Sequence record: MH791411.1
Reading direction: 5' to 3' (one strand)
DNA length: 64,000 nucleotides
The stretch's first letter is position 1, and every line of letters begins with the position of its first letter. The translations under genes were made by a program, and so were the position numbers. The notes beneath the pieces are model-generated. The model was not told where the DNA came from. It did not search any database and worked only from the letters and a program-made list of their open reading frames with translations. Positions 40,040 to 59,431 of this stretch are shown here, piece by piece.

Positions 40040-40063
40040 TTCAGTACTAAATCCTTTTACGCA

Positions 40064-40743: not shown

Positions 40744-40828
40744 GATAAAACTCCTTAATTTAGGAGGGAGAACCATTTCCCCCTCTCTATGTAAAACATT
40801 ATACATGAATCTAAGTACTATGCAAGTA

Positions 40829-41164
40829 CTATTTCATTTTAATACCTGGATTCAGGTAGCGGTGAGATCCATATTCTGGATCGGTTTCGGTCCAGTACTG
40901 TAAATCTATAGTACCTTTAGCGTTAATCTTATCTACCAGCTTATTCATCTTAGCGTATACTACATCAGCATCGATGCGTTTAAAGCCAGTGGCTTTAGTG
41001 AAGTAGTAGTGATTTGCTTCACTATCATTCAGGATGTACCGAGAACCGTCAGCCGTTTGTGCGACAATGAATGAGAATGATACTTTACGATCAAGGCCGT
41101 CGCAGTATACAGATGAATCATTGGTACGGATGAAAGCTTTAACGATAGCGATTGAAGTAGTCAT
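40829..41164 (-). CDS. Conserved-type phage early protein
   Basis: C-terminal IDLQYWTETDPEYGS resembles widespread phage early ORFs. Confidence 0.75.
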   Translation of the reverse strand: MTTSIAIVKAFIRTNDSSVYCDGLDRKVSFSFIVAQTADGSRYILNDSEANHYYFTKATGFKRIDADVVYAKMNKLVDKINAKGTIDLQYWTETDPEYGSHRYLNPGIKMK

Positions 41165-41325
41165 TTTGAATCTCCTAACTTTGTGGGCCGTCGCACCATT
41201 GCCGCCCTACGAGATACATTATTGCAGTACTGATATACTTTGTCAATACTTTTTTATTAATAGTTTTAGTTCCACCAGCAGATAGTTACTCACCGTTATT
41301 AACTATATATTTTGGATACACTTAT

Positions 41326-41392
41326 GCACCCTGTGGGCTAGTTTTTGTCTATGCGTATATAATAGCAAAGGGACTGACCTGAGTCAATCCCT
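41326..41392 (-). promoter_or_regulatory. Terminator/promoter/RCCC-hairpin module, copy 1 (others at 44078-44150, 47353-47420, 51358-51430)
   Basis: AAAGGGA-TTGAC-TCMG-GTCAG-TCCCTTT stem contains -35; TATTAT -10 17 bp downstream; then AGCCCACAGGGTGC. Confidence 0.85.
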
Positions 41393-41409
41393 TTTTTTAT
41401 TCTTTTTTG

Positions 41410-41610
41410 TTAGATGATTCTCCAATCATCAACGATCATGGTAAGATACCGAACCAGTGATTCGAGTGATTCGTGTTCTCGATAGTCTGACGCACCGCCA
41501 GCGGTACAAGTACAGCCGATTAAGCCGTTTTGCAATTCCTTAATCTGTACATCGATAAGGTTGGCTTTAGCTTCTTTCAGTACTTCAACCAGGGCGATAG
41601 CGATAGACAT
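41410..41610 (-). CDS. Early hypothetical protein
   Basis: Own promoter cassette, GGAG SD. Confidence 0.75.
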   Translation of the reverse strand: MSIAIALVEVLKEAKANLIDVQIKELQNGLIGCTCTAGGASDYREHESLESLVRYLTMIVDDWRII

Positions 41611-41700
41611 AATGTTTTACTCCAAACTATTGGCGGGAGAACTATTCCCCCGCTCTATGTAAAACATTATACATTACTGGTTAGTACTGTCAAATAGTTT

Positions 41701-41958
41701 TTATGAAATATCTTCGATGTAGTCGGCCCATTTCATTTTTTCAGTACTGTCAATGGCTACCGGATTATTTGGATCAAACCATTCACCATTACCGCAATAC
41801 ATACCAACGGCTACGGTTTTATAGCCATCCTGGGCCGTACACCACGACATTGCACGATAGATATGGCCTTTAACTGGTTGTAGTACTGGTAACGTTTTAT
41901 GGTCTTCTACGTAGGCCATCGCTTGATGATTTACCCGATATTGTGTGAACTGTTCCAT
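41701..41958 (-). CDS. Early hypothetical protein
   Basis: 85 aa, SD. Confidence 0.75.
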   Translation of the reverse strand: MEQFTQYRVNHQAMAYVEDHKTLPVLQPVKGHIYRAMSWCTAQDGYKTVAVGMYCGNGEWFDPNNPVAIDSTEKMKWADYIEDIS

Positions 41959-42034
41959 TATGTTTCCCCTTGTAGTTAGTAAAGTTATTACATCAGTACT
42001 ATCAAGCTATGTCAATAGTACTGAAATAAAACTT

Positions 42035-42259
42035 TTAGATTAGATTATTGAGGCCGTCAATGGTAGACTCACTTTCTTCTTTCTCCCATTGTCGGTAGTA
42101 CTTCCATGCTTCATGATAGGTGGCGATTAGTTCATCTTTTTGATCCTGGTTACATGCCAGTACTGAATCACGGTGAGCGGTGTTATAGATAGAATCGAAT
42201 GATTTCTTCTCTTCTGCCAGGTTAGCTACTTCCCGCATCAGTTCATCAAAGTTAGCCAT
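42035..42259 (-). CDS. Early hypothetical protein
   Basis: AGGAG SD, own promoter. Confidence 0.8.
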   Translation of the reverse strand: MANFDELMREVANLAEEKKSFDSIYNTAHRDSVLACNQDQKDELIATYHEAWKYYRQWEKEESESTIDGLNNLI

Positions 42260-42326
42260 TTTATTACTCCTTTTAGTGGGGGAGGATATCTCCCCCTATG
42301 CAAAACATTATACTTTGTTTTAGTTA

Positions 42327-42590
42327 TTATGCAAGTACTTTTTTCATATAAACATTAAATTCTACACCGCCGTAACCTTCCACGATGATATGTTTTGCGT
42401 TATCACGTTTGCACATAGTGAAACCATCGTTTACGTGTTTTGCATTTTCCAGGGCGACATCACCGATAGCGGCACATACGGCACTAATAACAGTATTCCG
42501 CAAAGTACTGGTATCATTGGCGGTCATAGTAGTTTGCAGTACTACGTTGTCGTATACGTGTGCATTGATAGTGATTTCGATAGTGTTCAT
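42327..42590 (-). CDS. Early hypothetical protein
   Basis: Start reassigned to MNTIEI. Confidence 0.75.
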   Translation of the reverse strand: MNTIEITINAHVYDNVVLQTTMTANDTSTLRNTVISAVCAAIGDVALENAKHVNDGFTMCKRDNAKHIIVEGYGGVEFNVYMKKVLA

Positions 42591-42677
42591 GGTGTATCTC
42601 CTGGACTTGAGGGGAAACCATTTCCCCCTCTCGATATAAAACATTATACGTTAATCTAACTACAATGCAAGTACTTT

Positions 42678-42869
42678 TTAAATTTTATTTCCGATATAGT
42701 CCGGCATGTTCTTTTCAGTCATACGCTTTGCTAATGTCTGCATATGGCTTATAGCGTTCAAGGTGTCTTCCTCCAGGGATGAATCGAGATAATCAGGATC
42801 ATTCTTCACCTTGCAATGATTATGATAGCGTAGTACTGCCAGTACTTTTTTAACTTCTTCTACTGTCAT
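42678..42869 (-). CDS. Early hypothetical protein
   Basis: 63 aa, coupled to upstream gene. Confidence 0.7.
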   Translation of the reverse strand: MTVEEVKKVLAVLRYHNHCKVKNDPDYLDSSLEEDTLNAISHMQTLAKRMTEKNMPDYIGNKI

Positions 42870-43138
42870 AATAAGTACCCCACTTCGTTAGCTTTCAGGT
42901 TAGTATCAATCATCAGTGGATTTTTGTAGTTCACAAAACGAGTAGTTTTCTCGATAGCGAATCCCATATAATCCAGCTTACTAACAGTACATTCATTCTT
43001 AAAAACTTCTTTCGCTGCATCGATGGCTGATTGCATGGATAACCGACCATCTAAATTAATGTTTCCAAATGATCCACCAGCAGAAGTAGGATTACCGTTC
43101 ATATCTTTAATGATCATAGTAGCGGAGTAGCTGGACAT
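42866..43138 (-). CDS. Early hypothetical protein
   Basis: LDGRLSMQSAID; contains a Chi site at 43074. Confidence 0.75.
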   Translation of the reverse strand: MSSYSATMIIKDMNGNPTSAGGSFGNINLDGRLSMQSAIDAAKEVFKNECTVSKLDYMGFAIEKTTRFVNYKNPLMIDTNLKANEVGYLL

Positions 43139-43227
43139 AATTTTGTTTCCTTTTATTGGTGTGGGGAGAACTATTCTCCCCTTGATGTAAACTATTATAC
43201 AGTACTAAAATACTTTGTCAAATACTT

Positions 43228-43635
43228 TTATTCGCCCATATAGATTAGATTATCATCGCCTACATAGGGATCGCAAACGTTGATTTCTTCACAGTACTTC
43301 GTGAATACATCGCCATAGTGACCTAAACCACGATCCCAAAAACCAGTTCCGTGACCTTCGCGGGTAAGGAACAGATCATGACCAGCTTGCTCATAACCGT
43401 AATCAATAAACATACCGCGAACTACTTCCAGATCATTACCGTGTTTCTCAATGAAGCGAGAACATGCAATCACCGCCGCTTGACGTGCTTCATCAGATAA
43501 CTCATAATCTTCCAGGTAATCGCCGTTATCATTATGTACAGTACTGAATTGCATAGCTTCAATGTAAGCTACAACCATTGCAGCATGATTTTTATCGTTA
43601 GTGATGTTCCGAGCGAGATTAGTAGTAGTAGACAT
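43228..43635 (-). CDS. Conserved-type phage protein (GHDxxLTRxGHGxGFWDR)
   Basis: AGHDLFLTREGHGTGFWDRG motif; function unknown to me. Confidence 0.8.
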   Translation of the reverse strand: MSTTTNLARNITNDKNHAAMVVAYIEAMQFSTVHNDNGDYLEDYELSDEARQAAVIACSRFIEKHGNDLEVVRGMFIDYGYEQAGHDLFLTREGHGTGFWDRGLGHYGDVFTKYCEEINVCDPYVGDDNLIYMGE

Positions 43636-43718
43636 GATTTTATTCCTTATTGTATTGGGGAGAACTATTCTCCCCTTGATGTAAACTATTATACAGTACT
43701 GATATACTTTGTCAATAC

Positions 43719-43940
43719 TTAATTACGTTTAAAATGATATGTGCCTTTATCATCCTGTACGCCCCATACTGATTTACCATCAACACCAGTGAAGCCGGAT
43801 TGTAATTCAATATGGAAACCATTATTATCAACTACAAAAACTTTTTTATTTTCATCCCGATAACATTGATATTCTGAATCAACATTAAAGGCCGCATCAT
43901 TCAGACGATTGGAAGCGTAAATGCAAGTCATTGTAGTCAT
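43719..43940 (-). CDS. Early hypothetical protein
   Basis: Start reassigned to MTTMTC. Confidence 0.7.
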   Translation of the reverse strand: MTTMTCIYASNRLNDAAFNVDSEYQCYRDENKKVFVVDNNGFHIELQSGFTGVDGKSVWGVQDDKGTYHFKRN

Positions 43941-44164
43941 GATTTTATTCCTTAATATACCAGGGAGAACCATTCCCCCTCTCGATATAAAACATTATAC
44001 TTGATTCTAAGTACAATGCAAGTACTTTTTTAAAAATAGTTTTCAGTACTGAATACTTATATAATAGATACACTTCCGCACCCTATGGGTCAGTGAGTTA
44101 TCTCTCAATGGATATATAATAGCAAAGGGACTGACCGGAGTCAATCCCTTTTTTTAATCTTTTT

Positions 44165-44749
44165 TTATCGTGTTACCTTACTTGCTGCCACATCACGCTT
44201 TTTATAGTACTGATTCCAGATATTGCTGGTTAAACCGTAATCAAGTACTTTAATAAGTCCATTACGATCCTGGCCGATATTCTGTTTTCTGATATCTCTT
44301 ATCGTTAGTGTTGATAATGTATCATCAACGTGTTGTAGTGCATCAGCAAAGCGGTGCTGGCGTTCGATTGCATTACGTTTAATATTGTACTTTAATTCAT
44401 TGCACGCGTTTACGTGCTTCACACTGCCTTTGCTTGCAGTACTCAACCGATCCATAACGATAAACATATTATCAGGATCGCATAAATGCATATGCACCTT
44501 TGCAAAGTACTGTTTCAATTGAGGGCGGTCATAGTCTAAAAAATTCCATACCTTACATTCAGTTTCATTTTGTTCTACACCCGCATCACAATTCGCGACC
44601 TTAATCACTAACCGATCATTTAAAGCGAAAACTATACGGGAAGAACCAGCACCGATGATCTCCAGGCCAGCTAACCGACAAGCTGAAAGGATCTCTTTGT
44701 TGGTTTCCATTTCTGACAGTGTACGGATGAATTTAGTATAATTACGCAT
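44165..44749 (-). CDS. Ser/Thr-type protein kinase-fold enzyme
   Basis: IGAGSSRIVF (Gly loop), VIKVA (Lys), EQNETE (alphaC Glu), RDIRKQN (catalytic loop), LDYG (DFG equivalent). Confidence 0.85.
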   Translation of the reverse strand: MRNYTKFIRTLSEMETNKEILSACRLAGLEIIGAGSSRIVFALNDRLVIKVANCDAGVEQNETECKVWNFLDYDRPQLKQYFAKVHMHLCDPDNMFIVMDRLSTASKGSVKHVNACNELKYNIKRNAIERQHRFADALQHVDDTLSTLTIRDIRKQNIGQDRNGLIKVLDYGLTSNIWNQYYKKRDVAASKVTR

Positions 44750-44780
44750 TGCATGTTCTCCTTGAGTTAATGAAACTATA

Positions 44781-45023
44781 TTACAGTACTTTACTATCAA
44801 TGGCAACTACTTTTTTAACATTAACGGCGTGGATCACTTCCTTCGTGTTTTTAGTACTGAATACTTTCGCCGCTCCTTGTTCGACCGTGATACGATAGCG
44901 ACCATTAACATCAACCATATTAATAAAGTCCGGCGTGCTGAATGGTGTTGTTTTACATTTGAGTACTGTTAACAGTTCCACCAGCGATGTAGTTTCTTTG
45001 ATACGTTTTTCTAAAGTAATCAT
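44781..45023 (-). CDS. Early hypothetical protein
   Basis: Start reassigned to MITLEK; Chi at 44978. Confidence 0.7.
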   Translation of the reverse strand: MITLEKRIKETTSLVELLTVLKCKTTPFSTPDFINMVDVNGRYRITVEQGAAKVFSTKNTKEVIHAVNVKKVVAIDSKVL

Positions 45024-45080
45024 TTTGTTTCCCCCGTGTTGGTATGTACATATAGTACTAAAACATTTGAGTACTGTCAA

Positions 45081-45299
45081 TTAGATAATATTATATTTCT
45101 TAAAATAAAATGCGTCCTGTGTTGGTTGATACTCGATACCGTTACCGTTATTGACTTCAACTAATAAACCTTTGTCAATTAGTTTTTTAATAGTACGATA
45201 CCCTTGTTGAAAATTGGTAAAATGTGAATCATTACGAAAGGTATAACCGTGCTTAACTGCTTCATCAATAGTTTTCTTTTCGATTTTAGATAATTTCAT
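45081..45299 (-). CDS. Possible winged-helix protein
   Basis: RTIKKLIDKGLLVEV..YQPT. Confidence 0.5.
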   Translation of the reverse strand: MKLSKIEKKTIDEAVKHGYTFRNDSHFTNFQQGYRTIKKLIDKGLLVEVNNGNGIEYQPTQDAFYFKKYNII

Positions 45300-45352
45300 T
45301 TTGTTTCTCCCGTGTTGGTATGTGTACATAGTACTAAAACAATTGAGTACTG

Positions 45353-45607
45353 TCAACGTGATATTAGTTTTATTTTCTTATTGTATTGTTGATGCTCATA
45401 AAGGTTTATCTTTCCTGTGTTCTCGATTACTATCCTGTTGTTAGTGTCCACGTCGATTACACGCAGTTTCCCGTTGCTTAACTTCCTAGGTAATAGGTTA
45501 CCATTAATAAACTCATTAGCAAGCTGTACGGCCTTTGTGATGATTCTCTGAGGTGCTTTATAGTGTACCCGTAAGATGTTATCTTTATATAGTTGAACCT
45601 TAATCAT
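45353..45607 (-). CDS. RelE/ParE-like toxin-fold protein
   Basis: KAVQLANEFINGNLLPRKL..VIDV..R..LYEHQQYNK pattern recalled from ParE-like families. Confidence 0.45.
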   Translation of the reverse strand: MIKVQLYKDNILRVHYKAPQRIITKAVQLANEFINGNLLPRKLSNGKLRVIDVDTNNRIVIENTGKINLYEHQQYNKKIKLISR

Positions 45608-45621
45608 TTTGTTTGTCCTAT

Positions 45622-45646
45622 AAAAAAGGCGGGAACTGATCCCGCC
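45622..45646 (-). terminator. Intrinsic terminator
   Basis: GGCGGGA-TCAGT-TCCCGCC-T6. Confidence 0.85.
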
Positions 45647-45668
45647 GTGTTGTTAGTACTGCAAGTTA

Positions 45669-46064
45669 TTAGATAACCTGGCGGCGTTTACTGTATACTG
45701 TTACACGATTACCCTTACGATCATGTCGGATCTCTTTCTGGTTGCGAATCAGTTCACTTGGACGCTTAAGGTTTGCCAGGTGATCCGCGTGAGTCCATGC
45801 GGTGTGGTTTACCTGTACTTTGATATCAGAATCAGCGATAAACTCATCTTGTGCGTCAAGTATTGCCGCCAGCATATCCGCTCGTTTTAGTTCTGCTGCT
45901 GTCAGTACTGGCTCAGGTGAATTCACAATATCAGAGATTTCTTTGAACTGTACGGCCCAGCGTTGACCTTTCGTTGCATCTTTGCCCATGTCTTTAAATG
46001 CTGCTCCTTCCTCGCGTGCAACAATACGGGCAGCTTCACGGGTAGCGTAGAATTTAGTAATCAT
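45669..46064 (-). CDS. Early protein, paralogue of 59079-59345
   Basis: FYATREAARIVAR..FKDMG..RWA..DRKGNRVTVY. Confidence 0.8.
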   Translation of the reverse strand: MITKFYATREAARIVAREEGAAFKDMGKDATKGQRWAVQFKEISDIVNSPEPVLTAAELKRADMLAAILDAQDEFIADSDIKVQVNHTAWTHADHLANLKRPSELIRNQKEIRHDRKGNRVTVYSKRRQVI

Positions 46065-46159
46065 GGTATACATCCTATTAGTTGAGTTAGTACTACAAGT
46101 TAGAGTCTATTATAAAGTACTATCTGGGCAATGTCAAATAGTACTTTAAATGGATTCTA

Positions 46160-46483
46160 TTACATGTCTTTCTTACGTTTTACATCGTGGTAGCGAACTG
46201 TTATTTCTTTGTTGATCTCTTCCTCGATGCGATGAATAACTTTTTCTTTCGGGTTGAAACCTATAACGGTTTCTTTAATGATCTCCAAGCCCGTGTATTC
46301 GCCTTGTGTACCGTAACCGTATGTAAAGGTTTCGTGTCCCAGGTCTTCCCAGCGGTCGCCAATTAACGCAGACACGTAGCAAGAGTGGTAAGTATTGCCG
46401 TGTGAATCAGTCCACCGATTAACGTTAATGTCAAAGGAGGTTACAATTTTCAATTCTACTTTCTGGGCAAGGATCATAGCCAT
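46160..46483 (-). CDS. Early protein, paralogue of 53003-53326
   Basis: RWTDSHGNTYHSC..FTYGY..VKRKKD. Confidence 0.8.
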   Translation of the reverse strand: MAMILAQKVELKIVTSFDINVNRWTDSHGNTYHSCYVSALIGDRWEDLGHETFTYGYGTQGEYTGLEIIKETVIGFNPKEKVIHRIEEEINKEITVRYHDVKRKKDM

Positions 46484-46844
46484 TTTTATTTCTCTCTCTT
46501 TGTTAGGAGGGGAACCATTCCCCTCGCTTGATGTAAACTATTATACAGTACTAAGATACTTTGTCAATACTTATTTTTTGGAAAGTTTACGCATTAATTC
46601 TACGCTTTCTTGTGAACGTTTTGCTACCTGGCAAGCTGTATGGGCAGTAAACATTTTTGTATAGTCTGACGCTTTGCCACCGAACCGAGCGGCACGTTCA
46701 CGGGCACTTGGAACTAATACTATTTCTTTATTACAGATAGTGCACTTAGCCATTTTTATTTCTCTCTCTTTGTTAGGAGGGGAACCGTTTCCCCTCACTT
46801 GATGTAAACTATTATACAGTACTAAGATACTTTGTCAATACTTA
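46477..46844. repeat. Two ~97-bp near-identical promoter cassettes flanking one gene
   Basis: 46477-46573 and 46747-46844. Confidence 0.9.
46571..46753 (-). CDS. Small Cys/His protein, possible Zn binding
   Basis: MAKCTICNK...HTAC. Confidence 0.75.
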   Translation of the reverse strand: MAKCTICNKEIVLVPSARERAARFGGKASDYTKMFTAHTACQVAKRSQESVELMRKLSKK

Positions 46845-47117
46845 AGTATTGTAAATGTCGTGAATAGTGATAAAGTTTTTACGACCGTAAACATGTAAAT
46901 CAGTATCAATGTAGTGCTTATCAAGTACATCCTCGACGCTTAAAGACGTGTCGTGAATATCTTCATAAAATTGTGGATCAACAATCGTGCTTAAGTCATC
47001 TGGCGTTAACTTATCGTTAAGGCATTGAACCGCCTGGATATCTGCTTCACGTTTCCATTGTTCCAGATTAGTAGTCAGTACTTGCTCGATTTCGTTAGCT
47101 GTAAGTAAAGTCCGCAT
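46842..47117 (-). CDS. Acidic early protein
   Basis: 91 aa, AAGGA SD. Confidence 0.75.
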   Translation of the reverse strand: MRTLLTANEIEQVLTTNLEQWKREADIQAVQCLNDKLTPDDLSTIVDPQFYEDIHDTSLSVEDVLDKHYIDTDLHVYGRKNFITIHDIYNT

Positions 47118-47185
47118 TTTAATGTTTCCTTATCAGTGGTTGATGTAAGTATTATACTCGTTTACTTTCTATTGTCAAACTATTT

Positions 47186-47262
47186 TATCAGGGGAGTTTT
47201 TCGTATGTCTTACTCCTGGACTACTTAACGGGGTTACTTATTTCGTTCCCCGTCCTGATGTA
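47186..47262 (-). ncRNA. Promoter-driven ORF-less structured RNA, copy 1
   Basis: -10 at 47267; outer ATCAGG/CCTGAT stem, ACGGGG/CCCCGT stem, GGAGT-14nt-ACTCC stem; no ATG. Confidence 0.6.
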
Positions 47263-47432
47263 AAACATTATACTTGATTCTAAGTACAATGCAAGTACTT
47301 TTTTAAAAATAGTTTTCAGTACTAGCCACCAGCAAACAATAGATACATTTATGCACCCTGTGGGCTAATTTGTTTCTATGCGTATATAATAGCAAAGGGA
47401 CTGACCGGAGTCAATCCCTTTTTCAAATATTT

Positions 47433-47582
47433 TTAAACTTCTTTCGGGTTGCGATATGTGATAGCGTTCGGGTACATTTGTTTAATGTTATTCCATGCCT
47501 GGTTAACATTATAACCACTTGATCGAATCAGTTGGTTATTACCGACACCTTGAAACACTACTTCAAATAAGAATTCTTTCAT
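47433..47582 (-). CDS. Small early protein (49 aa)
   Basis: Manual: MKEFLFEVVFQGVGNNQLIRSSG... Confidence 0.6.
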   Translation of the reverse strand: MKEFLFEVVFQGVGNNQLIRSSGYNVNQAWNNIKQMYPNAITYRNPKEV

Positions 47583-47752
47583 GCTTTCACCTCTCGATCT
47601 GCTTTGCCTTTACGCCAGGCCGTTGCTAATTGTTCGCGTTGCCATAAGTCGAGTGATACGTAAAGTTTTGCATTATCACCCTTCGGATATTCGCCAGTAG
47701 TACCAATCCGATAAAACAGATCTTTCAGTACTGTTAATTCTACCTGGACCAT
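47579..47752 (-). CDS. Small early protein
   Basis: Start reassigned to MVQVEL. Confidence 0.7.
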   Translation of the reverse strand: MVQVELTVLKDLFYRIGTTGEYPKGDNAKLYVSLDLWQREQLATAWRKGKADREVKA

Positions 47753-47839
47753 TATACTTTCCTCTTTGTTAGGAGGGGAACTATTCCCCTTCCGATATAA
47801 AACATTATACACTTTATTCAGTACTGTGCAAGTACTTTT

Positions 47840-48052
47840 TTAATCTTTCAGCCAATGATCCTGAATGAATTTTTCACCGGAACCTTGCTGCATTGATTGT
47901 AACAGACGTTCGCGATGAGCGGCGGCGAATTGCTCAGTACTATGCGTTACACCTGGTTGATATCTGGATTCACCATTTGGGGCGATGTATTGTACATCCC
48001 ACGGTTTTTCGTTAGTATCAGACCATTTACGAACGATTAGTTGACCTTGCAT
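47840..48052 (-). CDS. Early hypothetical protein
   Basis: Own promoter cassette. Confidence 0.75.
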   Translation of the reverse strand: MQGQLIVRKWSDTNEKPWDVQYIAPNGESRYQPGVTHSTEQFAAAHRERLLQSMQQGSGEKFIQDHWLKD

Positions 48053-48135
48053 TTTTCTTTCCTCTTAGTGGGGAGAATCATTTCTCCCCTTCATGTAAAC
48101 TATTATACAGTACTGGATTGCATTGTCAATAGTTT

Positions 48136-48459: not shown

Positions 48460-48486
48460 TTATTGTTATCCTCTATTAAATTAATA

Positions 48487-48675: not shown

Positions 48676-48753
48676 TTTTATTTCCTCTTAGTAGGGGAAG
48701 ATGTTTCCCCTTGATGCAAGTACTATAACAGTACTGAAAACTAAATGCAAGTA

Positions 48754-50207: not shown

Positions 50208-50297
50208 TTTATTTCTCTCTTAGGTTAAGTTAACTACTGTTTATAAAACTTATTATACAGTACTATCAATCTATGTCAATAGTACTGGTAATATATT

Positions 50298-50477: not shown

Positions 50478-50560
50478 TTTTTAATTCCTTAGTAGTGTAG
50501 TTGATAAAAGTTATTATGTCAGTACTATCAAACTATGTCAATAGTACTGTGATAATATTT

Positions 50561-51211: not shown

Positions 51212-51433
51212 GATTTGTTTCCTTATTACCAGGGGAAACCGTTTCCCCCTCTCGATGTAAAACATTATACGCTTATTGAGATAGTTTGCAAGTACTTTCT
51301 ACAAATACTTTTAAAATAGTTTTCAGTACTCAATACTCATATAATAGATACACTTATGCACCCTGTGGGCTAGTGAGCTATCTCTCAATGAATATATAAT
51401 AGCAAAATGGCTGACCGGAGTCAACCACTTTTT

Positions 51434-51816: not shown

Positions 51817-51897
51817 TTTGATTCTCCTGTTATTGGGGAGAATCATTTCTCCCCTTCATGTAAAACATTATACAGTACTAAAAACTAATTGCAAGTA

Positions 51898-52044
51898 CTA
51901 TTTTTTAGATTTACGCAAACTTTCTACCATCTCAGGAGTAAGGCCCGGCGGGTAGGAAACTACTTCATCAACGAAACGTAAAGGGAATACCCCAGCGAAA
52001 GGTGAACGTGCTTTCTTAGTATTACTCTTTTTTGATGCTTTCAT
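51898..52044 (-). CDS. Small early protein (48 aa)
   Basis: Manual: MKASKKSNTKKARSPFAG...; own promoter cassette. Confidence 0.6.
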   Translation of the reverse strand: MKASKKSNTKKARSPFAGVFPLRFVDEVVSYPPGLTPEMVESLRKSKK

Positions 52045-52113
52045 TTCATATTCCTTAATTAGTGGGGAGAATCATTTCTCCCCTTCATGTAAAACATTAT
52101 ACGCGTTTAAAAA

Positions 52114-52323: not shown

Positions 52324-52328
52324 ATTAA

Positions 52329-52601
52329 TTAACCTTTTAAGTACTGGCTTAAGTAGTCTTGTTGATCTTCGGTGATTGCAGCCATCTTCCCTAGTACTGG
52401 ATTAATGATATAATCCCCTGTAACGTCCTGTAACGCATTCTCAGGCGGTTTAACGGCTGGGGTAGCCATAGCCATCGCCTGGACTTGTTCGACGCTATAA
52501 CGCTCATATAGGCGGCATTCTTCCGGTGTTAACATAGCATCAATGCGTTTCATTGGTTTAATGATGCTTTCAACTTCATTCAGTACTTGATTAACGTTCA
52601 T
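52329..52601 (-). CDS. Early hypothetical protein
   Basis: 90 aa. Confidence 0.75.
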   Translation of the reverse strand: MNVNQVLNEVESIIKPMKRIDAMLTPEECRLYERYSVEQVQAMAMATPAVKPPENALQDVTGDYIINPVLGKMAAITEDQQDYLSQYLKG

Positions 52602-52652
52602 GGTATAATCCCCAATATAAGCGGCCTGAATCGACCGCTAACGATGTTTTGA

Positions 52653-52922
52653 TTAATAGGTGTATGGTTGACGTTCAAACAATGATTGCACGTTGTACGC
52701 CCCACTAATGGGCTTTGCTGGTAAATCAATTTTATATTGCTCACGCTTAAAGATAATAAAACGGCAATTGTTTTTAACATCAAAATTGATTGAACGTTCC
52801 AGTAGTTTACCATCGTGCACAAATACAAGATAACCGCTCGCTACTTGTTTTGTAGTACTGGTTGCAACCATAGACCGCCGAACATGTGTACCTGCGTCGA
52901 TTAAAGTACTGATATTTTTCAT
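52653..52922 (-). CDS. Early hypothetical protein
   Basis: 89 aa, GAGG SD. Confidence 0.7.
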   Translation of the reverse strand: MKNISTLIDAGTHVRRSMVATSTTKQVASGYLVFVHDGKLLERSINFDVKNNCRFIIFKREQYKIDLPAKPISGAYNVQSLFERQPYTY

Positions 52923-53002
52923 TATACGTTCCTCTTAAGTTAATTTAATTTCTTTCCCCTATGCAGACACTATATCAAAGTATCTGCATAAAGTAAAGCT
53001 AA

Positions 53003-53326
53003 TTAAAGATCTTTTTTGCGTTTAACATTCTGTACAGTACAATGCAACGGGATATTAAGATCATTGCACAAACGAGTAAGGGAGGTTTCATCAGTATTAA
53101 GCCCGTCTACTGATTCCTTTAATAGATCTAACGCCGTTTGTTGATATGCATCTTCATAGCCATAAGTAAATGATTCAACCGCCAGATCATTCAAACCGTT
53201 ATCCAGTTCGACGCTTACATGACAAGAATGATAAGTATTGCCATATGAATCAGTCCAACGTTTACCGTCAACATTGATTGCACGGATTGCAGCCAGGGAA
53301 ACGGTGTTAATGATAGTTTTAGCCAT
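53003..53326 (-). CDS. Early protein, paralogue of 46160-46483
   Basis: RWTDSYGNTYHSC. Confidence 0.8.
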   Translation of the reverse strand: MAKTIINTVSLAAIRAINVDGKRWTDSYGNTYHSCHVSVELDNGLNDLAVESFTYGYEDAYQQTALDLLKESVDGLNTDETSLTRLCNDLNIPLHCTVQNVKRKKDL

Positions 53327-53415
53327 TTTTGTATTCCTTAAATTAATATGTTGTCTTGATAAAATCTATTATGCCAGTACTATCAAACTATGTCAATAGT
53401 ACTGTGATAATATTT

Positions 53416-53628
53416 TTACTTACTTTCTTTCGCTGCTTTGTGCGTTGCCACTGCCATAACCACATCAGCACGAACAAAGTTTTTAACCGTGTCGCTGTAA
53501 TAATTGATCGCTTCATCAATATCTGCGAACATCCGATACATACCGCACCACGATACTTTATAACCTGCTTTCACTTCTTCCAGCTTAACCAGTGATTTGT
53601 TAACTTTGATTTTAGTAATGATAGCCAT
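53416..53628 (-). CDS. Early hypothetical protein
   Basis: Flanked by ~75-bp direct repeats of a promoter (about 53350-53420 and 53643-53715). Confidence 0.75.
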   Translation of the reverse strand: MAIITKIKVNKSLVKLEEVKAGYKVSWCGMYRMFADIDEAINYYSDTVKNFVRADVVMAVATHKAAKESK

Positions 53629-53707
53629 TTTATTTTCCTCAGTTGTCTTGATAAAATCTATTATGCCAGTACTATCAAACTATGTCAATAGCACTGTGAT
53701 AATATTT

Positions 53708-53851
53708 TTACTTACTTTTTGCTTTCTTGATTGCTTCCACCTGGTCGGCCCATTCTTTACCCCATACTTGTAAATTATAATGGTACTGGCAAAGAGCAAC
53801 GCCCCGCTTTAAACCCGTAATAGATTTCTGACCACATTGACAAGTTTTCAT
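53708..53851 (-). CDS. Small Cys-rich protein (47 aa)
   Basis: Manual: MKTCQCGQK...ALCQYH. Confidence 0.6.
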   Translation of the reverse strand: MKTCQCGQKSITGLKRGVALCQYHYNLQVWGKEWADQVEAIKKAKSK

Positions 53852-53937
53852 TTTAGTTTCCTTGTAGTGGGGAGAACCATTTTCTCCCCTTGATGTAATG
53901 TATTATACTTTATTCGATTTACTTTGCAAGTACTTTT

Positions 53938-54165
53938 TTAATTTAATTCATCAAGGCAAAGGATACGCTCAACGCCCAAATCAGTTAAACTAATCGACGG
54001 CACTTGATAGGTTTCAATGTATGCTACACTTGCCCACTGACCGAACTCATTAACGGCCCAGGTATTCATTGCATTTTGCAATTCCGCACCTTCCTTGTTG
54101 GTAATGACTGCAACTACTTGTTCGTTGCCAGTAGTACCAGATACGCGAGTAATGATAATAGCCAT
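53938..54165 (-). CDS. Early hypothetical protein
   Basis: Start reassigned to MAIIIT. Confidence 0.7.
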   Translation of the reverse strand: MAIIITRVSGTTGNEQVVAVITNKEGAELQNAMNTWAVNEFGQWASVAYIETYQVPSISLTDLGVERILCLDELN

Positions 54166-54450
54166 TGTTTTGATTCCTTTGATTTGGAAGGAGAACCGTT
54201 TCCCCCTCTCGATGTAAAACATTATACGCTAATCTCTTAATCGTGCAAGTACTTTTTATTACTTTTTGCAAAATACTTTAAACGCTCTCAATCGCGTTCT
54301 TACAGCCTTAACGCCACCAGCTAGGGCAATGCATCAGATAATCAGTTTAATGCGTTAGAATCGTTTCTAGGCGGTGCTGGTGGCATGGTAAACGATAAAC
54401 ACAAAAAAGCCCACCGTTTAAGGTGGGCTAGTGATTCAGTACTTTAATTG

Positions 54451-54933
54451 TTATGCTTCAACTTTGCGATGAGATTCGATCCATTCCTCGCGAGTCATAC
54501 CGCTGGCGTTAATCGCGTCCAGTACTACCGCAATGCAGTTACCACGCACCGGAATCAGATATTCTTCCCCGTTGTCCAGTACTACCGCTACGCGTTCCTG
54601 AATCCATTTTTTGGCTTTTACTTCTGGCTTGTCTTCCCCATACTTAACCGCCAGGGCTTTTTGTGCCATCTCTGTAACTACTTCCAGATCCAATCCAACT
54701 ACTGCCGCCTGAATACTTTCGATTGTTGCTTGTAGTTCTGCTTCACGGGCCGCCTTTGCCGCTTCAATTTCTGCCGCTTTATTTGCTTGTAGTTCTTTCG
54801 CAGTACTGTACGCGATGTTAAAATTATTGCGTACCGCTTTCATGGTATCGTTATCCAGTTCAGCCAGGATCTCAGCCGCGACGTTAGTTTCATTTGCTAC
54901 CAGTGCTTTGATGAATGATTTTACATTAGCCAT
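54451..54933 (-). CDS. H-NS/StpA-like protein with altered DNA-binding motif
   Basis: Coiled-coil N-terminus; C-terminus KAK..DNGE.7.GNCIAVVLDAINASGMTREEWI aligns by eye to H-NS KAK..ENGE.7.[22 protein letters not shown]. Confidence 0.65.
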   Translation of the reverse strand: MANVKSFIKALVANETNVAAEILAELDNDTMKAVRNNFNIAYSTAKELQANKAAEIEAAKAAREAELQATIESIQAAVVGLDLEVVTEMAQKALAVKYGEDKPEVKAKKWIQERVAVVLDNGEEYLIPVRGNCIAVVLDAINASGMTREEWIESHRKVEA

Positions 54934-54997
54934 TTTATAAATCCTCAATTAAAGTTTAGTTTACGTTTATTAGTGTATCAAAGTTTTCTCGACGTGT

Positions 54998-55050
54998 CCA
55001 GTTTTTCGTTCGACTTACTGGCGGTCTACTTAGTGCTCCCCGTCTTGATG
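54998..55050 (-). ncRNA. Structured RNA motif, copy 3 (5' leader of H-NS-like gene)
   Basis: CCAGT-AAGTCGAACGAAAA-ACTGG; compensatory version of copies 1 and 2. Confidence 0.6.
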
Positions 55051-55166
55051 TAATACATTCTACGCTTTTCTGCGGTAATGTCAACTACTTTCTTAAAACT
55101 ATTTTCAAAGTATCTCAGTACTACGATACTACAAAAACAAAAAAGCCCACCAGGTGGGCTATGTAC

Positions 55167-55397
55167 TTAATCAGTGAGTAAAATATTAAACACTTTACCA
55201 TTTAACGTTATTGGTGCACTGCTACCAGGCACAAGATCCGTTAGTATACCTGCAATCGCTTTATCATTGGCTACCTTTCCAGTGTCCAACAGTACTACAG
55301 TACTGATAAGATTAACGCTCGTTTCAATATCATAATGCACGGCGTTAAGTAGTTGTGTAGTACTGCTTTCGTTAAGTAAAACAATTCGCTTAGTCAT
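55167..55397 (-). CDS. Early hypothetical protein
   Basis: 76 aa, followed by terminator at ~55137-55160. Confidence 0.65.
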   Translation of the reverse strand: MTKRIVLLNESSTTQLLNAVHYDIETSVNLISTVVLLDTGKVANDKAIAGILTDLVPGSSAPITLNGKVFNILLTD

Positions 55398-55418
55398 GAT
55401 GTTACCCCGTAGTATCTA

Positions 55419-55718
55419 TCAACGGCAATTAATAACGCCGGTATGAGTTACTTTCTCGGTATCCATTACAGTGACCGAACCGCGTTTAGCACTGGCATCA
55501 TAATAAATTGTCGTGCTACCGTTTTCGTCTTCTTCATGGAACGGGCCGTTTTTAAATGCTTCCGGCTGGATCTCTAAATCCTTTAATACAATCTCGCCAG
55601 TTCTTTCATCGGTCATTGCAACAGTGCACTGAATGAATTTTTCACTACTTACATCTAATGACGCATTAACAGCGAAAGAGGAAACAGATAAAGCCAGGGC
55701 GATGATTGCAATTTTCAT
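55419..55718 (-). CDS. Secreted/periplasmic protein
   Basis: Sec signal MKIAIIALALSVSSFAVNA. Confidence 0.75.
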   Translation of the reverse strand: MKIAIIALALSVSSFAVNASLDVSSEKFIQCTVAMTDERTGEIVLKDLEIQPEAFKNGPFHEEDENGSTTIYYDASAKRGSVTVMDTEKVTHTGVINCR

Positions 55719-55802
55719 TTGATTATCCTTAGTTACCAGGGGAAACCGTTTCCCCTTGCGATGTAAAATATTATACAGTACTAAAAACTAATTGCAAGTA
55801 CT

Positions 55803-56039
55803 TTATGATTTTTTATAAAACATTTCAGCAGTGATATTTTTACCCGTTGGCTGTACTTTATCCAGAATTTTTTGATGCCCTGGTCGTCCAAAGGAATATG
55901 ATCCGTAAACAGTAAACCAGTAGTTACCCTCAGTGTTTACATGTACAGCACAATAAGGAACACCACGCGATTCATCACTAGTAAAGTGTGATACCGTTCC
56001 CGTTACATTCGCAGACGTTGATTTGATTTGTTCGACCAT
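55803..56039 (-). CDS. Early hypothetical protein
   Basis: Own cassette. Confidence 0.75.
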   Translation of the reverse strand: MVEQIKSTSANVTGTVSHFTSDESRGVPYCAVHVNTEGNYWFTVYGSYSFGRPGHQKILDKVQPTGKNITAEMFYKKS

Positions 56040-56147
56040 TTTCTTATTCCTTAGTTACCAGGGGAACCGCTCCCCCTATGCAAAACATTATACGCGTTTA
56101 AAAACTAATTGCAAGTATTTTAATAAAAAGTATTTGAAAAATAGTTG

Positions 56148-56216
56148 TTGACAAGTGCATCCAGTACTGGCATAATTACTACATCAAGACGAAACAGTCA
56201 CTAACCCACCGGGTGC
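56148..56216 (+). promoter_or_regulatory. Antisense sigma70 promoter with RCCC-hairpin, no ORF
   Basis: TTGACA-17-CATAAT; AACCCACCGGGTGC at 56203. Confidence 0.75.
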
Positions 56217-56282
56217 CGAGATCCGTCTATTAAATGATTCAGTACTGAAAAAGTAACGGGGAGTTATTATCTCCCCGTGTTG

Positions 56283-56504
56283 TTATTTTGTAAGGTATAA
56301 ACAGAAGTCGCCTTTATTTGCTACGCCGCCAGTGTAACGCGAGGAATAGTTAGAAACGTCCTGGACTTCTGCTATTACCAGGGTATCATCATTCAATTCG
56401 TCGCAGAAGCAAACGGCTGGATCTTGTACGCCGATTTTGTCGGCATGTTCCCGCATAGATTTAACCAGTGCTTCCAGTTGGGAAAGAGTAGTGATATTAG
56501 CCAT
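56283..56504 (-). CDS. Early hypothetical protein
   Basis: Start reassigned to MANITT. Confidence 0.7.
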   Translation of the reverse strand: MANITTLSQLEALVKSMREHADKIGVQDPAVCFCDELNDDTLVIAEVQDVSNYSSRYTGGVANKGDFCLYLTK

Positions 56505-56588
56505 TTTATTTTCCTCATTACCAGGGAGAACCATTTCTCCCTTTGATGTAAACCATTATACAGTACTGAAAACTAATTGCAAGTACTT

Positions 56589-56777
56589 TTAATTAAATTC
56601 CATAAAATCATTTTCAACGTGCACAACAATCTGATTATTTTTAAAGGACGCAGAAAACTCTATACAATCATAAACCGCTTTTTCTGTTACCAGACTATGA
56701 GCACCAATCGGATTAATTGGGGATTGAATTGTTTCAATCTCGTTACCTTGTTCATTAACGATTAAAATATTAAACAT
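56589..56777 (-). CDS. Early hypothetical protein
   Basis: AGGAG SD. Confidence 0.7.
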   Translation of the reverse strand: MFNILIVNEQGNEIETIQSPINPIGAHSLVTEKAVYDCIEFSASFKNNQIVVHVENDFMEFN

Positions 56778-56816
56778 TGCCGTTACTCCTGGATAGTGTT
56801 AACTCGATATAAAGTA

Positions 56817-56999
56817 TTATACGCCTTTATTGCTTAGTGTCCAGTGATCACGCATCATACGCCCCGCACGATCCCAGCTAGTAGGCATGGGTATGCCTTG
56901 CAATTCGTTAGGGGAGATCTCGACCTCGATCCCTACATCAATAACAGTCATTCCAGCTTTCGCAGCTTGCTCGCGGATAACCTCAGATAATGTTGTCAT
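56817..56999 (-). CDS. Early hypothetical protein
   Basis: AGGAG SD. Confidence 0.7.
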   Translation of the reverse strand: MTTLSEVIREQAAKAGMTVIDVGIEVEISPNELQGIPMPTSWDRAGRMMRDHWTLSNKGV

Positions 57000-57073
57000 G
57001 ATTAAAGCTCCTGGATAGTGTTAACTCGATATAAAGTATTATACAGTACTGAAAACTAATTGCAAGTACTTTT

Positions 57074-57334
57074 TTAATATTGTTTGTCGTCGTCTTCCTC
57101 GATGAATTGACCGACGAAATGATCTACTTTCGCTTTGAGGCTTTTATAATCTTCTTCTACTTCCGTTAAACGTTCCTGGTAGTATTCCAATGCTTCAAGA
57201 TACGCCGCCTCAGCAGTTTTTGCACGCATAGCTAAATTCATTCCACGCGTTTCATCAAATAGCCAATAACCATCGGTGCACTGGCTAATAGATAATGACT
57301 TGCTTAGTACTGTATAGCTAATTACTTTACTCAT
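57074..57334 (-). CDS. Conserved-type phage early protein
   Basis: SQCTDGYWLFDETRGMNLAMRAKT. Confidence 0.8.
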   Translation of the reverse strand: MSKVISYTVLSKSLSISQCTDGYWLFDETRGMNLAMRAKTAEAAYLEALEYYQERLTEVEEDYKSLKAKVDHFVGQFIEEDDDKQY

Positions 57335-57391
57335 TAGATAACCCTCAGTAAAGGCGGGAACTATTACCCGCCATTATCTCAGTACTGAATA

Positions 57392-57631
57392 TTACATTCC
57401 AACCATTGCAGCACGGATCGCAGTAGTGCTATACTTAAAGCCGTCCGGCGTTGTAGTAGTACCGTTGGCTTTTAATCTGCGGTACATACATTCCGCAGCA
57501 ATATCTTTAGTTCTACTTTGTGCGATGCAACTTTGAGCAAGCCGATACAATGACTCACCGTTATTAATCCAAAGGCTTACATTCCAATGAGTTTTGTTTT
57601 TGTGTCCGTTGTAAGTTTTAGTACTAGCCAT
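57392..57631 (-). CDS. Early protein, paralogue of 59432-59671
   Basis: YNGHKNKTHWNVSLWINN...TPDGFKYSTTAIRAAMVGM. Confidence 0.8.
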   Translation of the reverse strand: MASTKTYNGHKNKTHWNVSLWINNGESLYRLAQSCIAQSRTKDIAAECMYRRLKANGTTTTPDGFKYSTTAIRAAMVGM

Positions 57632-57721
57632 TTTTAAATCCTCGTTTGAGCGGGGAACCACTCCCCGCCTCGATATAAAGTATTATACGCTTTTAAACTT
57701 AGTTTGCAAGTACTTTTTAAA

Positions 57722-58333
57722 TTAATATTCGATTGATTCCACTACGCCATCAATAACATTGAATTGATACTCGTTACCCTCAATCAGTGCCGTAATGTTT
57801 TCAGTAGTGAATTGATCCTCATATGCATTCTCTAAATCACGGTACAACTTGCGGGACAATTCACGAATAGTTTCAGTGAGTAGTTCCTCAAGCTCATTAA
57901 CTAACGTTTCTTGTTTTGCGGTTAAATCAGTGTAAGCCGATTCAATGTACCCGCTTACAGTATTCTCATGCGAGTAGTGGGAGTGCGAACGTTTTACACT
58001 CATCGCCAAATCATCTTCATTCAGCAAGTGACGGATTGAGCGATACTTAGTTAATGCTCTTACCTTGCGTAAAAACTTCACTGCGTCAACGTGGTCAGTA
58101 CTGATTGATGCACCGTCACCCTGGGACCAAAAACCACTGAATTGTATTTCAGCGTCATTAATGCCATATTCCGGTAGTACTGTTTCTTTATAGTATTCAA
58201 TTTCACTTTCAGAAAAATAATTGTCGTTTGAGTTTTTTTCACGTTCCCGAACCAGTTCGATAGCTGACGTTTGTTGTTCTGCGTTCAATTCAGAAAAAGC
58301 CATAACATAAGTAGTAGTAGTGATAGTTTTCAT
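57722..58333 (-). CDS. Protein of family often annotated as toxin-antitoxin antitoxin
   Basis: TYVMAFSELN..FSGFWSQGDGAS..LYRDLENAYE; family recalled, function unproven. Confidence 0.55.
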   Translation of the reverse strand: MKTITTTTYVMAFSELNAEQQTSAIELVREREKNSNDNYFSESEIEYYKETVLPEYGINDAEIQFSGFWSQGDGASISTDHVDAVKFLRKVRALTKYRSIRHLLNEDDLAMSVKRSHSHYSHENTVSGYIESAYTDLTAKQETLVNELEELLTETIRELSRKLYRDLENAYEDQFTTENITALIEGNEYQFNVIDGVVESIEY

Positions 58334-58400
58334 TTTGTAACCCTCATTCAGTAGTTGATGTAAGTATTATACGCTTTTAAAAACATTTGTCAAACTATTT

Positions 58401-58478
58401 TATCAGGGGAGTTTTTCGTGTGCCTTACTCCTGGGCTACTTAACGGGAAGTTACTTATTTCGTTCCCCGTCCTGATGT
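58401..58478 (-). ncRNA. Promoter-driven ORF-less structured RNA, copy 2
   Basis: Near-identical to 47186-47262; -10 at 58484. Confidence 0.6.
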
Positions 58479-58557
58479 AAAACATTATACGCCTTTAAAC
58501 ATAGTTTGCAAGTACTTTTTAAAAATAGTTTTCAGTACTGAATAGTAAAAAAAAGTA

Positions 58558-58730
58558 TTGACAGCATTATCAAGTACTGGTATAATATACCCCATGACAA
58601 CAGCTAACCCACCGGGTGCACAATTGTAACTATACTAAACTAATTTTTCTATAGATACACTCCCGCACCCTATGGGCTACGGCTTATCTGCCAATGAATA
58701 CATTATGCCAGTACTGACAAAATAAGTCAA
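58558..58730. promoter_or_regulatory. Convergent promoter pair, each followed by an RCCC-hairpin
   Basis: + TTGACA-17-TATAAT (58558/58581), motif 58606; - TTGACT-17-CATAAT (58725/58702), motif 58665. Confidence 0.8.
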
Positions 58731-58760
58731 TACCGGCAATTGTAAAGATTTGTAAACTGC

Positions 58761-58991
58761 TTATACTGCAATCGCGTCCAGGCTATAATAATAATAAGTG
58801 CCGTATTGGTGTACTTTATTACCTTTTATTTCAGTACTGAATGAATCCGAACGGTTTGCATATGATGTTAATTTAAAGTACTTTGATTTGCTGATACGTT
58901 GCCATACACCACAGATCCGCTGTAAGTAAGTAGTTTTATTCGTGGTAGTATCTTTTACGGTTTTAACTTCAGTCATATACATATTAGTCAT
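58761..58991 (-). CDS. Early hypothetical protein
   Basis: Own cassette. Confidence 0.7.
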   Translation of the reverse strand: MTNMYMTEVKTVKDTTTNKTTYLQRICGVWQRISKSKYFKLTSYANRSDSFSTEIKGNKVHQYGTYYYYSLDAIAV

Positions 58992-59078
58992 TTTCATTAC
59001 TCCAGGTTATAGGCGGGAAGAGTTCCCGCTCTCGATGTAAAACATTATACGCCATTAAACATAGTTTGCAAGTACTTT

Positions 59079-59345
59079 TTATTCAAGTACTGCAATCTTT
59101 TTAGTACGGTACACGGTCACGCGGTTGCCCTTTCGGTCGAGCTTTATTTCTACCACTCGACGCGATACACTATCGGGACTTTTTAAGGCCGCTAACCAGT
59201 ACTGTAATGATCTGGCGGTACTACGCTTTACAATGGCCCAACGTTTACCACGTTCCGATTGTACGCCCATATCTTTAAACGTTGCCCCGTCCTGGCGTGC
59301 GGCGATCCGAGCTTGTTCACGCGTCGCAAAATACTTAATTTTCAT
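59079..59345 (-). CDS. Early protein, paralogue of 45669-46064
   Basis: YFATREQARIAAR. Confidence 0.8.
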   Translation of the reverse strand: MKIKYFATREQARIAARQDGATFKDMGVQSERGKRWAIVKRSTARSLQYWLAALKSPDSVSRRVVEIKLDRKGNRVTVYRTKKIAVLE

Positions 59346-59431
59346 GCTGTTGCCCTTATCGTTGGTGTATGAATAAAACACTATTATAAAGTACTATCGC
59401 AAAAAAATGATAGTACTTTAAATAAATTCTA

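Follow-up and report, generated by a model that had tools for sequence, protein, structure and literature searches.

AGTACT, a lineage-wide palindromic word of RaK2-like jumbo phages, and its fixed positions in the early promoters of Escherichia phage Ecwhy_1

Known systems and the genome-wide word

Several described systems rely on short DNA words or on proteins that favour phage DNA, and these provide points of comparison for the palindrome AGTACT, which we analysed in a 64,000-nucleotide stretch (hereafter the window) of Escherichia phage Ecwhy_1 (MH791411.1, Asteriusvirus, 354,537 bp). The window is identical in sequence to positions 248,001-312,000 of this genome, and nearly all of its genes lie on the - strand. 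We find that the AGTACT sites at early promoters within the window are one local manifestation of a word that is spread over whole genomes throughout a phage lineage and is under selection.

The GATC/Dam/SeqA/MutH system of E. coli provides one comparison. GATC is, like AGTACT, a short strict palindrome distributed genome-wide at sub-kilobase to kilobase spacing, and both words form helical-face pairs at a few regulated promoters or origins, where GATC functions as a timing switch. GATC is not strongly over-represented, however, whereas AGTACT reaches 8 times expectation. SlmA, a dimeric helix-turn-helix reader, has palindromic sites (GTGAGTACTCAC) with the same AGTACT core, but SlmA depends on GT...AC flanks, whereas the phage sites avoid flanks of this type and have T-n-C...G-n-A instead. 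Moreover, SlmA sites number in the tens in E. coli, as compared to 986 AGTACT sites in the 355-kb phage.

Two further comparisons concern the distinction between own and foreign DNA. TF1 of Bacillus phage SPO1 is a DNA-binding protein that prefers phage DNA and inhibits transcription at early-promoter sites. This is the two-layer logic that we propose for a putative AGTACT reader, although TF1 recognises hydroxymethyluracil-containing DNA and not a sequence word. No HU-family gene came up in our analysis, in which no search aimed at one was made. Chi and the uptake sequences (uptake signal sequence/DNA uptake sequence, USS/DUS) are short words that exceed chance by far, occupy coding DNA in all frames and separate own from foreign DNA. 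These words are asymmetric and strand-biased and have known readers, whereas AGTACT is palindromic and viral.

AGTACT occurs 275 times in the window, compared to 18.2 +/- 4.3 times in dinucleotide-preserving shuffles (15-fold), and 986 times in the whole genome (2.8/kb, ~8 times expectation). Every module contains it, capsid, portal, polymerase and tail genes among them, and ~85% of the 986 sites fall in coding DNA of every temporal class. No other palindromic hexamer is strongly over-represented, the runner-up standing at 3.4 times expectation. A null that keeps protein sequence and per-gene codon usage yields 229 coding sites where 834 are observed (3.6 times, z=56), and AGTACT is the most enriched of all hexamers against this null, while its one-mismatch neighbours remain at 0.9-1.4 times. 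The shuffles and the codon-preserving null rule out a codon or dinucleotide artefact. On sense strands, the hexamers that rank next after AGTACT and the words overlapping it are TTGACC, TGACCA and TGACCC (~2.0-2.3 times the codon-preserving null), which may be part of another signal.

The sites within genes use all three reading frames (67/60/43), are equally dense in + and - strand genes and are distributed flatly along genes except for dips at the ribosome-binding site and start codon. Their flanks are mirror images, with C at -1 in 44% and G at +1 in 48% of sites, giving the preferred context T-n-C-AGTACT-G-n-A. The use of all frames, the mirror-image flanks and the strictness of the word point to a strict reader of double-stranded DNA with two-fold symmetry. 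The octamer CAGTACTG was rejected as the true unit, since both flanks are present at 222 of the 986 sites, about what two independent flank preferences would give. A genome-wide strand-specific AGTAC(W) was likewise rejected: sense-strand AGTACA and TGTACT both stand at ~1.33 times the null, and the asymmetry seen in the window derives from island 1, an AGTACT-free segment described below. AGTACT resembles Chi and USS/DUS in an excess that survives a codon-aware null in all frames but not in orientation bias, being a palindrome with symmetric flanks of which only the island 1 variant is oriented. AGTACT is also the ScaI hexamer; avoidance of restriction would be visible as its depletion, but the word is enriched 8-15 times and predicts ~1,000 ScaI sites per genome.

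We compared site conservation with background in ~35-39 kb of aligned core genes per comparison. AGTACT was conserved at 64% against a background of 41% in 121Q, 36% against 20% in Munch, 29% against 19% in GAP32 and 38% against 19% in RaK2. Most sites nonetheless turn over, and the density is maintained. In the 270 kb outside the early block, sites are spaced more regularly than random (coefficient of variation (CV) 0.88, p=0.0005). No gap there exceeds 1,964 bp, compared to a maximum of 2,246-3,797 bp under Poisson placement. E. coli K-12, by comparison, has 6 sites in 100 kb (0.06/kb, 0.26 times expectation), which makes the phage ~45 times denser. A reader of the word would therefore hit phage DNA everywhere within 2 kb and host DNA scarcely at all. 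The first-pass annotation of the window had described the motif at 40810-59420, but sites run from position 65 to 63971. It had also suggested that coding-region sites may act as a sink, but they are no passive one, given an excess of 3.6 times over the codon-preserving null, conservation above background and spacing more even than chance. Any recoding or engineering of these phages must take the word into account.

AGTACT is enriched 4.6-14.5 times in Asteriusvirus (121Q), Munch (Salmonella), GAP32 (Cronobacter), XbC2, RaK2 (Klebsiella) and fHe-Yen9-04 (Yersinia). XbC2, a Mimasvirus recorded on Xanthomonas, has 9.6 times the expected number. Two more distant relatives are depleted, with 1 site in 45 kb against ~15 expected in PA5oct (Pseudomonas; 0.06 times) and 3 sites in 41 kb against ~14 expected in Atu_ph07 (Agrobacterium; 0.22 times), and the unrelated coliphages T4 (0.70 times) and T5 (0.61 times) are not enriched. 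Enrichment thus tracks phage lineage and not host, which favours a phage-encoded reader, and the word could be used as a metagenome marker for the RaK2-like clade. We found no description of the word in the RaK2, CBB, Sharanji and fEgEco12 papers or by full-text searches, and nothing relevant in the literature on AGTACT or CAGTACTG in phages. The GC-rich palindromes AGGCCT and AGCGCT, and often ACGCGT, are wholly absent from most of the ~40-50 kb RaK2-like genome pieces examined.

Early promoters

The early-promoter block (40043-62000, - strand) contains 42 sigma70-type promoters that all point in the same direction and 143 AGTACT sites, 40 of which are at fixed promoter offsets. Promoters were identified by scanning the - strand of this interval for sigma70-like sequences with at least 10 of 12 consensus matches, and many are perfect TTGACA-N16/17-TATAAT. 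The proposal that AGTACT sits at fixed promoter positions is borne out: the word is present at 33 of the 42 promoters (which include many copies and fall into 24 clusters at >=75% identity, 16 of them with AGTACT), and always at one of a few offsets from the -10 hexamer, counted from its first base. At -7/-8 it appears as AGTACTG-TATAAT or AGTACTGG-CATAAT, at -17/-18 as TTGACAGTACT, at -27 as AGTACTTGCAA, where the final T doubles as the first T of the -35, and at -29 to -31 as AGTACTATTGACA, directly upstream of TTGACA. The density of sites is 27/kb in promoter windows, ~7/kb in other non-coding DNA of the block and 4.4/kb in its coding DNA.

These positions are retained in diverged relatives. 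RaK2 belongs to a different genus (~74% identical in core genes), yet its syntenic early region reaches 20 sites per 2 kb, and of its 27 strong sigma70 promoters, 18 have AGTACT at -7/-8, 7 have it at -27/-28 and 2 at -30. Between Ecwhy_1 and 121Q, 87% of early-block AGTACT sites are conserved, compared to 62% of arbitrary hexamers. AGTACT lies in the spacer beside the -10 or on or abutting the -35, often in pairs separated by 20-24 bp. This placement is the one expected of an operator at which RNA polymerase is blocked, and it is reasonable to read the early-promoter sites as operators. Operators would, however, be expected to be confined to regulated promoters, whereas 834 of the 986 genomic sites are coding and belong to all modules. 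The first-pass annotation had a regulator or methylation switch controlling all early promoters; the operator-like placement stands, but "all" is too strong, as the perfect 12/12 promoters at 16777, 47156 and 58371 lack AGTACT. The existence of these promoters also indicates that the word is not needed for promoter recognition or activity as such.

The paired sites and the dyad reported earlier are real. Pairs are present at 40814/40825 (11 bp apart), 46116/46140 (24 bp), 53376/53398 (22 bp) and 56562/56582 (20 bp), and the perfect dyad AAAGTACTATC-N10-GATAGTACTTT occupies 59388-59419. Close pairs are not in excess overall, with 38 gaps of <=30 bp against 41 expected from Poisson placement; pairs at 20-24 bp are (20 observed, 7.5 expected), mostly through copies of promoter cassettes. 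A two-site promoter on the - strand at 56555-56587 exemplifies this layout: one AGTACT (56582-56587) overlaps the -35 TTGCAA and another, 20 bp away (56562-56567), abuts the -10 TATAAT (56555-56560), with copies at 51867-51899, 55770-55802 and 57038-57070. In a second type (50252-50286, - strand), an inverted repeat, AGTACTAT...ATAGTACT (50259-50286), with sites 22 bp apart encloses the -35 TTGACA and is followed by the -10 TATAAT at 50252-50257; related copies are found at 50521-50548 and 53376-53403. Pairs 11 bp apart lie at 40814-40830, 47820-47836 and 48719-48735.

The dyad at 59388-59419 shares the layout of the inverted-repeat promoters (AGTACTAT...ATAGTACT then TATAAT), minus the -35. 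On the - strand, its downstream AGTACT is followed by T-TATAAT (offset -7), and no -35-like hexamer is present. As RNA, the dyad is predicted to form a hairpin followed by a U-rich tail (-14.4 kcal/mol, z=-4.4).

A composite repeat, AAAGGGATTGACTCCGGTCAGTCCCTTT-GCTATTATAT, is found at 41364-41394, 44121-44151, 47391-47421 and 51401-51431. It consists of a hairpin with a 12-bp stem that includes a -35-like TTGACT, followed by a -10-like TATTAT, scores as both terminator and promoter and represents the sole promoter family without AGTACT. Metagenome contigs that cover 55000-60999 contain cassette-to-cassette joins, for example from 56554 to 57038 (483 bp skipped), which suggests that the set of small early genes changes from strain to strain, through gain and loss by recombination between repeated promoters. 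Contigs from RNA-type sequencing runs are fragmented and break at the promoter repeats.

Part of the block appears to be terminally repeated. The genome of the close relative fEgEco12 (97% average nucleotide identity) is linear and bears direct terminal repeats of 20,993 bp (PMC13070987), and colinearity with this phage suggests that the ~21-kb terminal repeat corresponds to ~39.9-53.6 kb of the window. In support of this mapping, the gene at 45081 is present twice in records that contain the terminal repeat and falls under a "Direct Terminal Repeats" feature in vB_Ec-M-J. Ten restriction enzymes, a set that does not include ScaI, cut fEgEco12 virion DNA as predicted (PMC13070987), which gives no sign of global base modification in the relative.

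AGTACT-free islands

Two segments of the window are free of AGTACT. Island 1 (24481-32465, - strand, ~20 genes) lacks AGTACT and contains 43 AGTACA, all of them on its coding strand. That strand is devoid of GTACT as well, although GTAC density is normal, and AGTACA is ~5 times enriched. These AGTACA words share the flanks of the genome-wide AGTACT, occur in all frames (15/12/11) and show even spacing (CV 0.73, p=0.02). The edges of the island are sharp, with AGTACT at 24475 and next at 32466, and no other block in the rest of the genome resembles it. No recognisable domains were found in its genes. Island 1 recurs in 121Q, PBECO4, UE-S1 and SD-15_S21, which are 75-80% identical there and have 34-46 coding-strand AGTACA, none on the opposite strand and 0-4 AGTACT. 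The palindrome is thus actively excluded from island 1, as judged from these genomes, and a half-broken form in one orientation is retained. AGTACT to coding-strand AGTACA, or the reverse, is the most frequent change between Ecwhy_1 and 121Q, accounting for 5 of 26 unconserved AGTACT sites plus 2 in the reverse direction.

Island 2 (34521-40042, - strand) has no AGTACT and a random level of GTAC (2.7/kb), and it consists of arrays of tiny (~70-90 aa) paralogous genes. Its counterpart in 121Q is likewise AGTACT-free. Its beginning coincides with the presumed inner end of the terminal repeat, a point at which G+C rises from 0.34 to 0.41. Recent horizontal acquisition was rejected as the cause of the islands, as they are present and motif-free in genomes that are only 75-80% identical.

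The sites of EcoP15I in phage T7 provide a precedent for one-way words. They all have one orientation, which provides escape from this Type III enzyme, and are not enriched. Island 1 is similar in that copies of an asymmetric word all point the same way (43 to 0) but differs in that AGTACA itself shows ~5-fold enrichment and takes the place of the palindrome in a single block. The state of island 1 speaks strongly against a mutational drive that acts uniformly, and it hints at an additional, directional reading of the word.

Candidate readings, readers and writers

The reading that we favour, tentatively and at somewhat less than an even chance, has two layers: a symmetric reader of the RaK2-like lineage marks phage DNA and acts as an operator protein at early promoters. 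AGTACT would be the recognition word of a sequence-specific reader of double-stranded DNA with two-fold symmetry, most likely a phage-encoded homodimeric protein of this lineage. The reader would act everywhere on phage DNA and hardly on that of the host, thereby telling the two kinds of DNA apart in a way that needs no base modification. Within the terminal repeat and early block, where AGTACT is built into sigma70 promoter cores, often twice at a distance of about two helical turns, accumulation of the reader would lead it to occupy promoters, exclude RNA polymerase and turn early transcription off. The genome-wide layer could serve to coat or compact the DNA, to shield it from a nuclease that breaks down host DNA or to load some machinery. 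Binding of AGTACT by a protein, repression through this binding and the purpose of the genome-wide layer are the parts that we infer, while the statistics, placement, conservation and clade distribution of the word are observations. Jumbo phages of this group are not known to form a phage nucleus. The word offers a concrete handle on how phage and host DNA are kept apart and how dozens of consensus sigma70 promoters are shut off, one that is accessible to experiment through mutation, pull-down, ScaI digestion and recoding.

Several points weigh against a symmetric two-layer reader. The strictness of AGTACT is more like that of restriction-modification enzymes, as typical transcription factors tolerate degenerate sites. 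A symmetric dimer does not explain the 43 same-orientation AGTACA words of island 1, and, more broadly, none of the models proposed here accounts for this island. The search for a reader was also largely negative. The putative winged-helix protein encoded at 45081-45356 (- strand; annotated coding sequence 45081-45299, 72 aa), which the first-pass annotation had singled out as a candidate, was not detected in the AGTACT-rich RaK2, GAP32, Munch and Yersinia phage. An HTH_37 regulator that adjoins the sigma factor in GAP32 and CBB has no Asteriusvirus or RaK2 homologue and was rejected as a clade-wide reader, and Pfam and PHROGs yielded no further candidate for the tested proteins from the early block and from beside the sigma factor.

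The 45081 protein nonetheless remains a candidate winged helix: its Atlas model (pTM 0.57) resembles MarR/ArsR winged helices with a TM-score of 0.63-0.70 by query. Its gene sits behind a promoter that carries two AGTACT sites (45330 and 45346). The first 20 codons of the open reading frames (ORFs) 45081-45356 and 44781-45080 (45300-45356 and 45024-45080) are 80% identical because both overlap the repeated promoter cassette, and the true starts of the two ORFs are probably internal ATGs, as annotated for 45081-45299. A second protein put forward earlier as a DNA-binding candidate, described as H-NS-like and encoded at 54451, received language-model scores of 0.75-0.77 only, under the level of a usable lead.

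A broader formulation, which we regard as possible but less probable than the two-layer reader, is that RaK2-like jumbo phages possess a sequence-based identity system whose word doubles as an early operator and from which island 1, by the terminal repeat, forms a polar or exempt domain. The AGTACA words of island 1 would make the reader directional or inactive there.

The main rival is that AGTACT is a methylation word that follows Dam/SeqA/MutH logic, which we consider rather unlikely. A phage methyltransferase would modify AGTACT, the genome-wide sites would serve strand discrimination or another methylation-reading process, and promoter pairs that become hemimethylated after replication would be sequestered or inactivated, tying early shut-off to replication. 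A strict 6-bp palindrome without near-cognate enrichment is typical of restriction-modification-type enzymes, and a methylation word would be expected to occur genome-wide without long bare stretches, as AGTACT does (CV 0.88, maximum gap 1,964 bp, below 2 kb). The promoter pairs at 11 or 20-24 bp also fit this explanation. Enzymes are available, too: the window encodes a Dam-family (PF05869) N6-adenine DNA methyltransferase (329-853, - strand, E=6e-33), which is a candidate writer if AGTACT is methylated, and the genome additionally encodes a C5 methyltransferase. Some PF05869 members are non-specific.

Yet no methyltransferase family is visibly common to the AGTACT-rich clade, as far as the relatives' genomes, which were examined in part, reveal. 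Close homologues of the PF05869 gene are found only in Asteriusvirus-level relatives among the matches listed, and the enriched phages differ in their methyltransferases, with PF05869 in Asteriusvirus, PF01555 in a variable slot of the Yersinia phage and no recognised family for GAP32_519. Methylation of RaK2 DNA has been reported, which would favour a methylation word, but it is at CpG, which AGTACT does not contain (PMC3622015). The deamination products AGTATT and AATACT give no signal (0.89 and 0.95 times the null), and no MutH-like or SeqA-like gene was identified.

A Chi-like mode of self-protection appears less likely still. The word, or a protein bound to it, would stop or tame a nuclease or helicase, phage-encoded or of the host, that destroys word-free DNA, so that host DNA is recycled and phage DNA survives, with promoter sites as a secondary use. 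The density of 45 times that of the host, the lack of any uncovered stretch of >2 kb and the presence of the word in every module and on both strands are consistent with this idea, as is the observation that ten enzymes cut the relative's virion DNA, which speaks against a global self-marking modification (PMC13070987). The Sharanji authors suggest that nucleotides are obtained by degrading host DNA (PMC11895373). A palindromic word would serve a reader arriving from either side, and the orientation in island 1 would fit a directional reader. No nuclease has been tied to AGTACT, however; islands 1 and 2 (13.5 kb) would stay unprotected, and exact promoter offsets are not predicted. In addition, true Chi (GCTGGTGG) is itself at ~2 times the codon-aware null, suggesting that RecBCD is handled separately. 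This octamer occurs 31 times genome-wide (24 on the - and 7 on the + strand), and its 19 occurrences on sense strands, compared to 8.8 +/- 2.5 in the codon-preserving null, represent a modest, gene-oriented enrichment.

We consider it very unlikely that a host protein, such as SlmA or another enterobacterial DNA-binding protein, reads AGTACT and is recruited or titrated, perhaps to block division. The 12-bp SlmA consensus GTGAGTACTCAC does have an AGTACT core (PMC3020112), Sharanji-infected cells filament (PMC11895373), and most of the enriched phages infect Enterobacterales while the Pseudomonas relative is depleted. But SlmA requires G,T at positions 1-2 and a purine at 3 (PMC3020112), and GT.AGTACT.AC fits only 2 of the 986 sites, so that SlmA is ruled out as the general reader. 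No flank is used less than the SlmA type, with 6 occurrences of GAGTACTC against 222 of CAGTACTG; moreover, T4 and T5 share the host yet are unenriched, whereas XbC2 (Xanthomonas) is enriched 9.6 times.

Finally, it is hard to credit that there is no reader at all and that mutation or repair bias (as very-short-patch repair inflates CCWGG in E. coli), codon or dinucleotide usage and cassette duplication produced the pattern: many promoters are indeed paralogous copies and AGTACT/AGTACA interconversion is the most frequent change between Ecwhy_1 and 121Q, but the excess over shuffles (275 against 18) and over the codon-preserving null (834 against 229), conservation above background, regular spacing, the same offsets in 16 sequence-distinct promoter families and in RaK2, and the 34-46 one-substitution words that island 1 has kept in five genomes, which a uniform drive would convert, all contradict this explanation.

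Two further loci of the genome came up in the search for readers and writers. Ecwhy_1 314.9-328.3 kb encodes ~12 tandem paralogues, most of which are annotated "putative DNA condensation protein". These were rejected as readers, as they are RCC1-repeat (beta-propeller) proteins; the product name derives from the RCC1 family name and is an annotation artefact that carries no DNA-binding evidence. At Ecwhy_1 113,484-114,323, a segment of ~840 bp in the structural core, no ORF exceeds 81 aa. A conserved methyltransferase at the corresponding core slot of the Yersinia phage was rejected, as Ecwhy_1 has no sizeable ORF and relatives have different mobile genes there: the slot is occupied by the PF01555 methyltransferase in the Yersinia phage and by homing endonuclease-like genes in Munch and RaK2.

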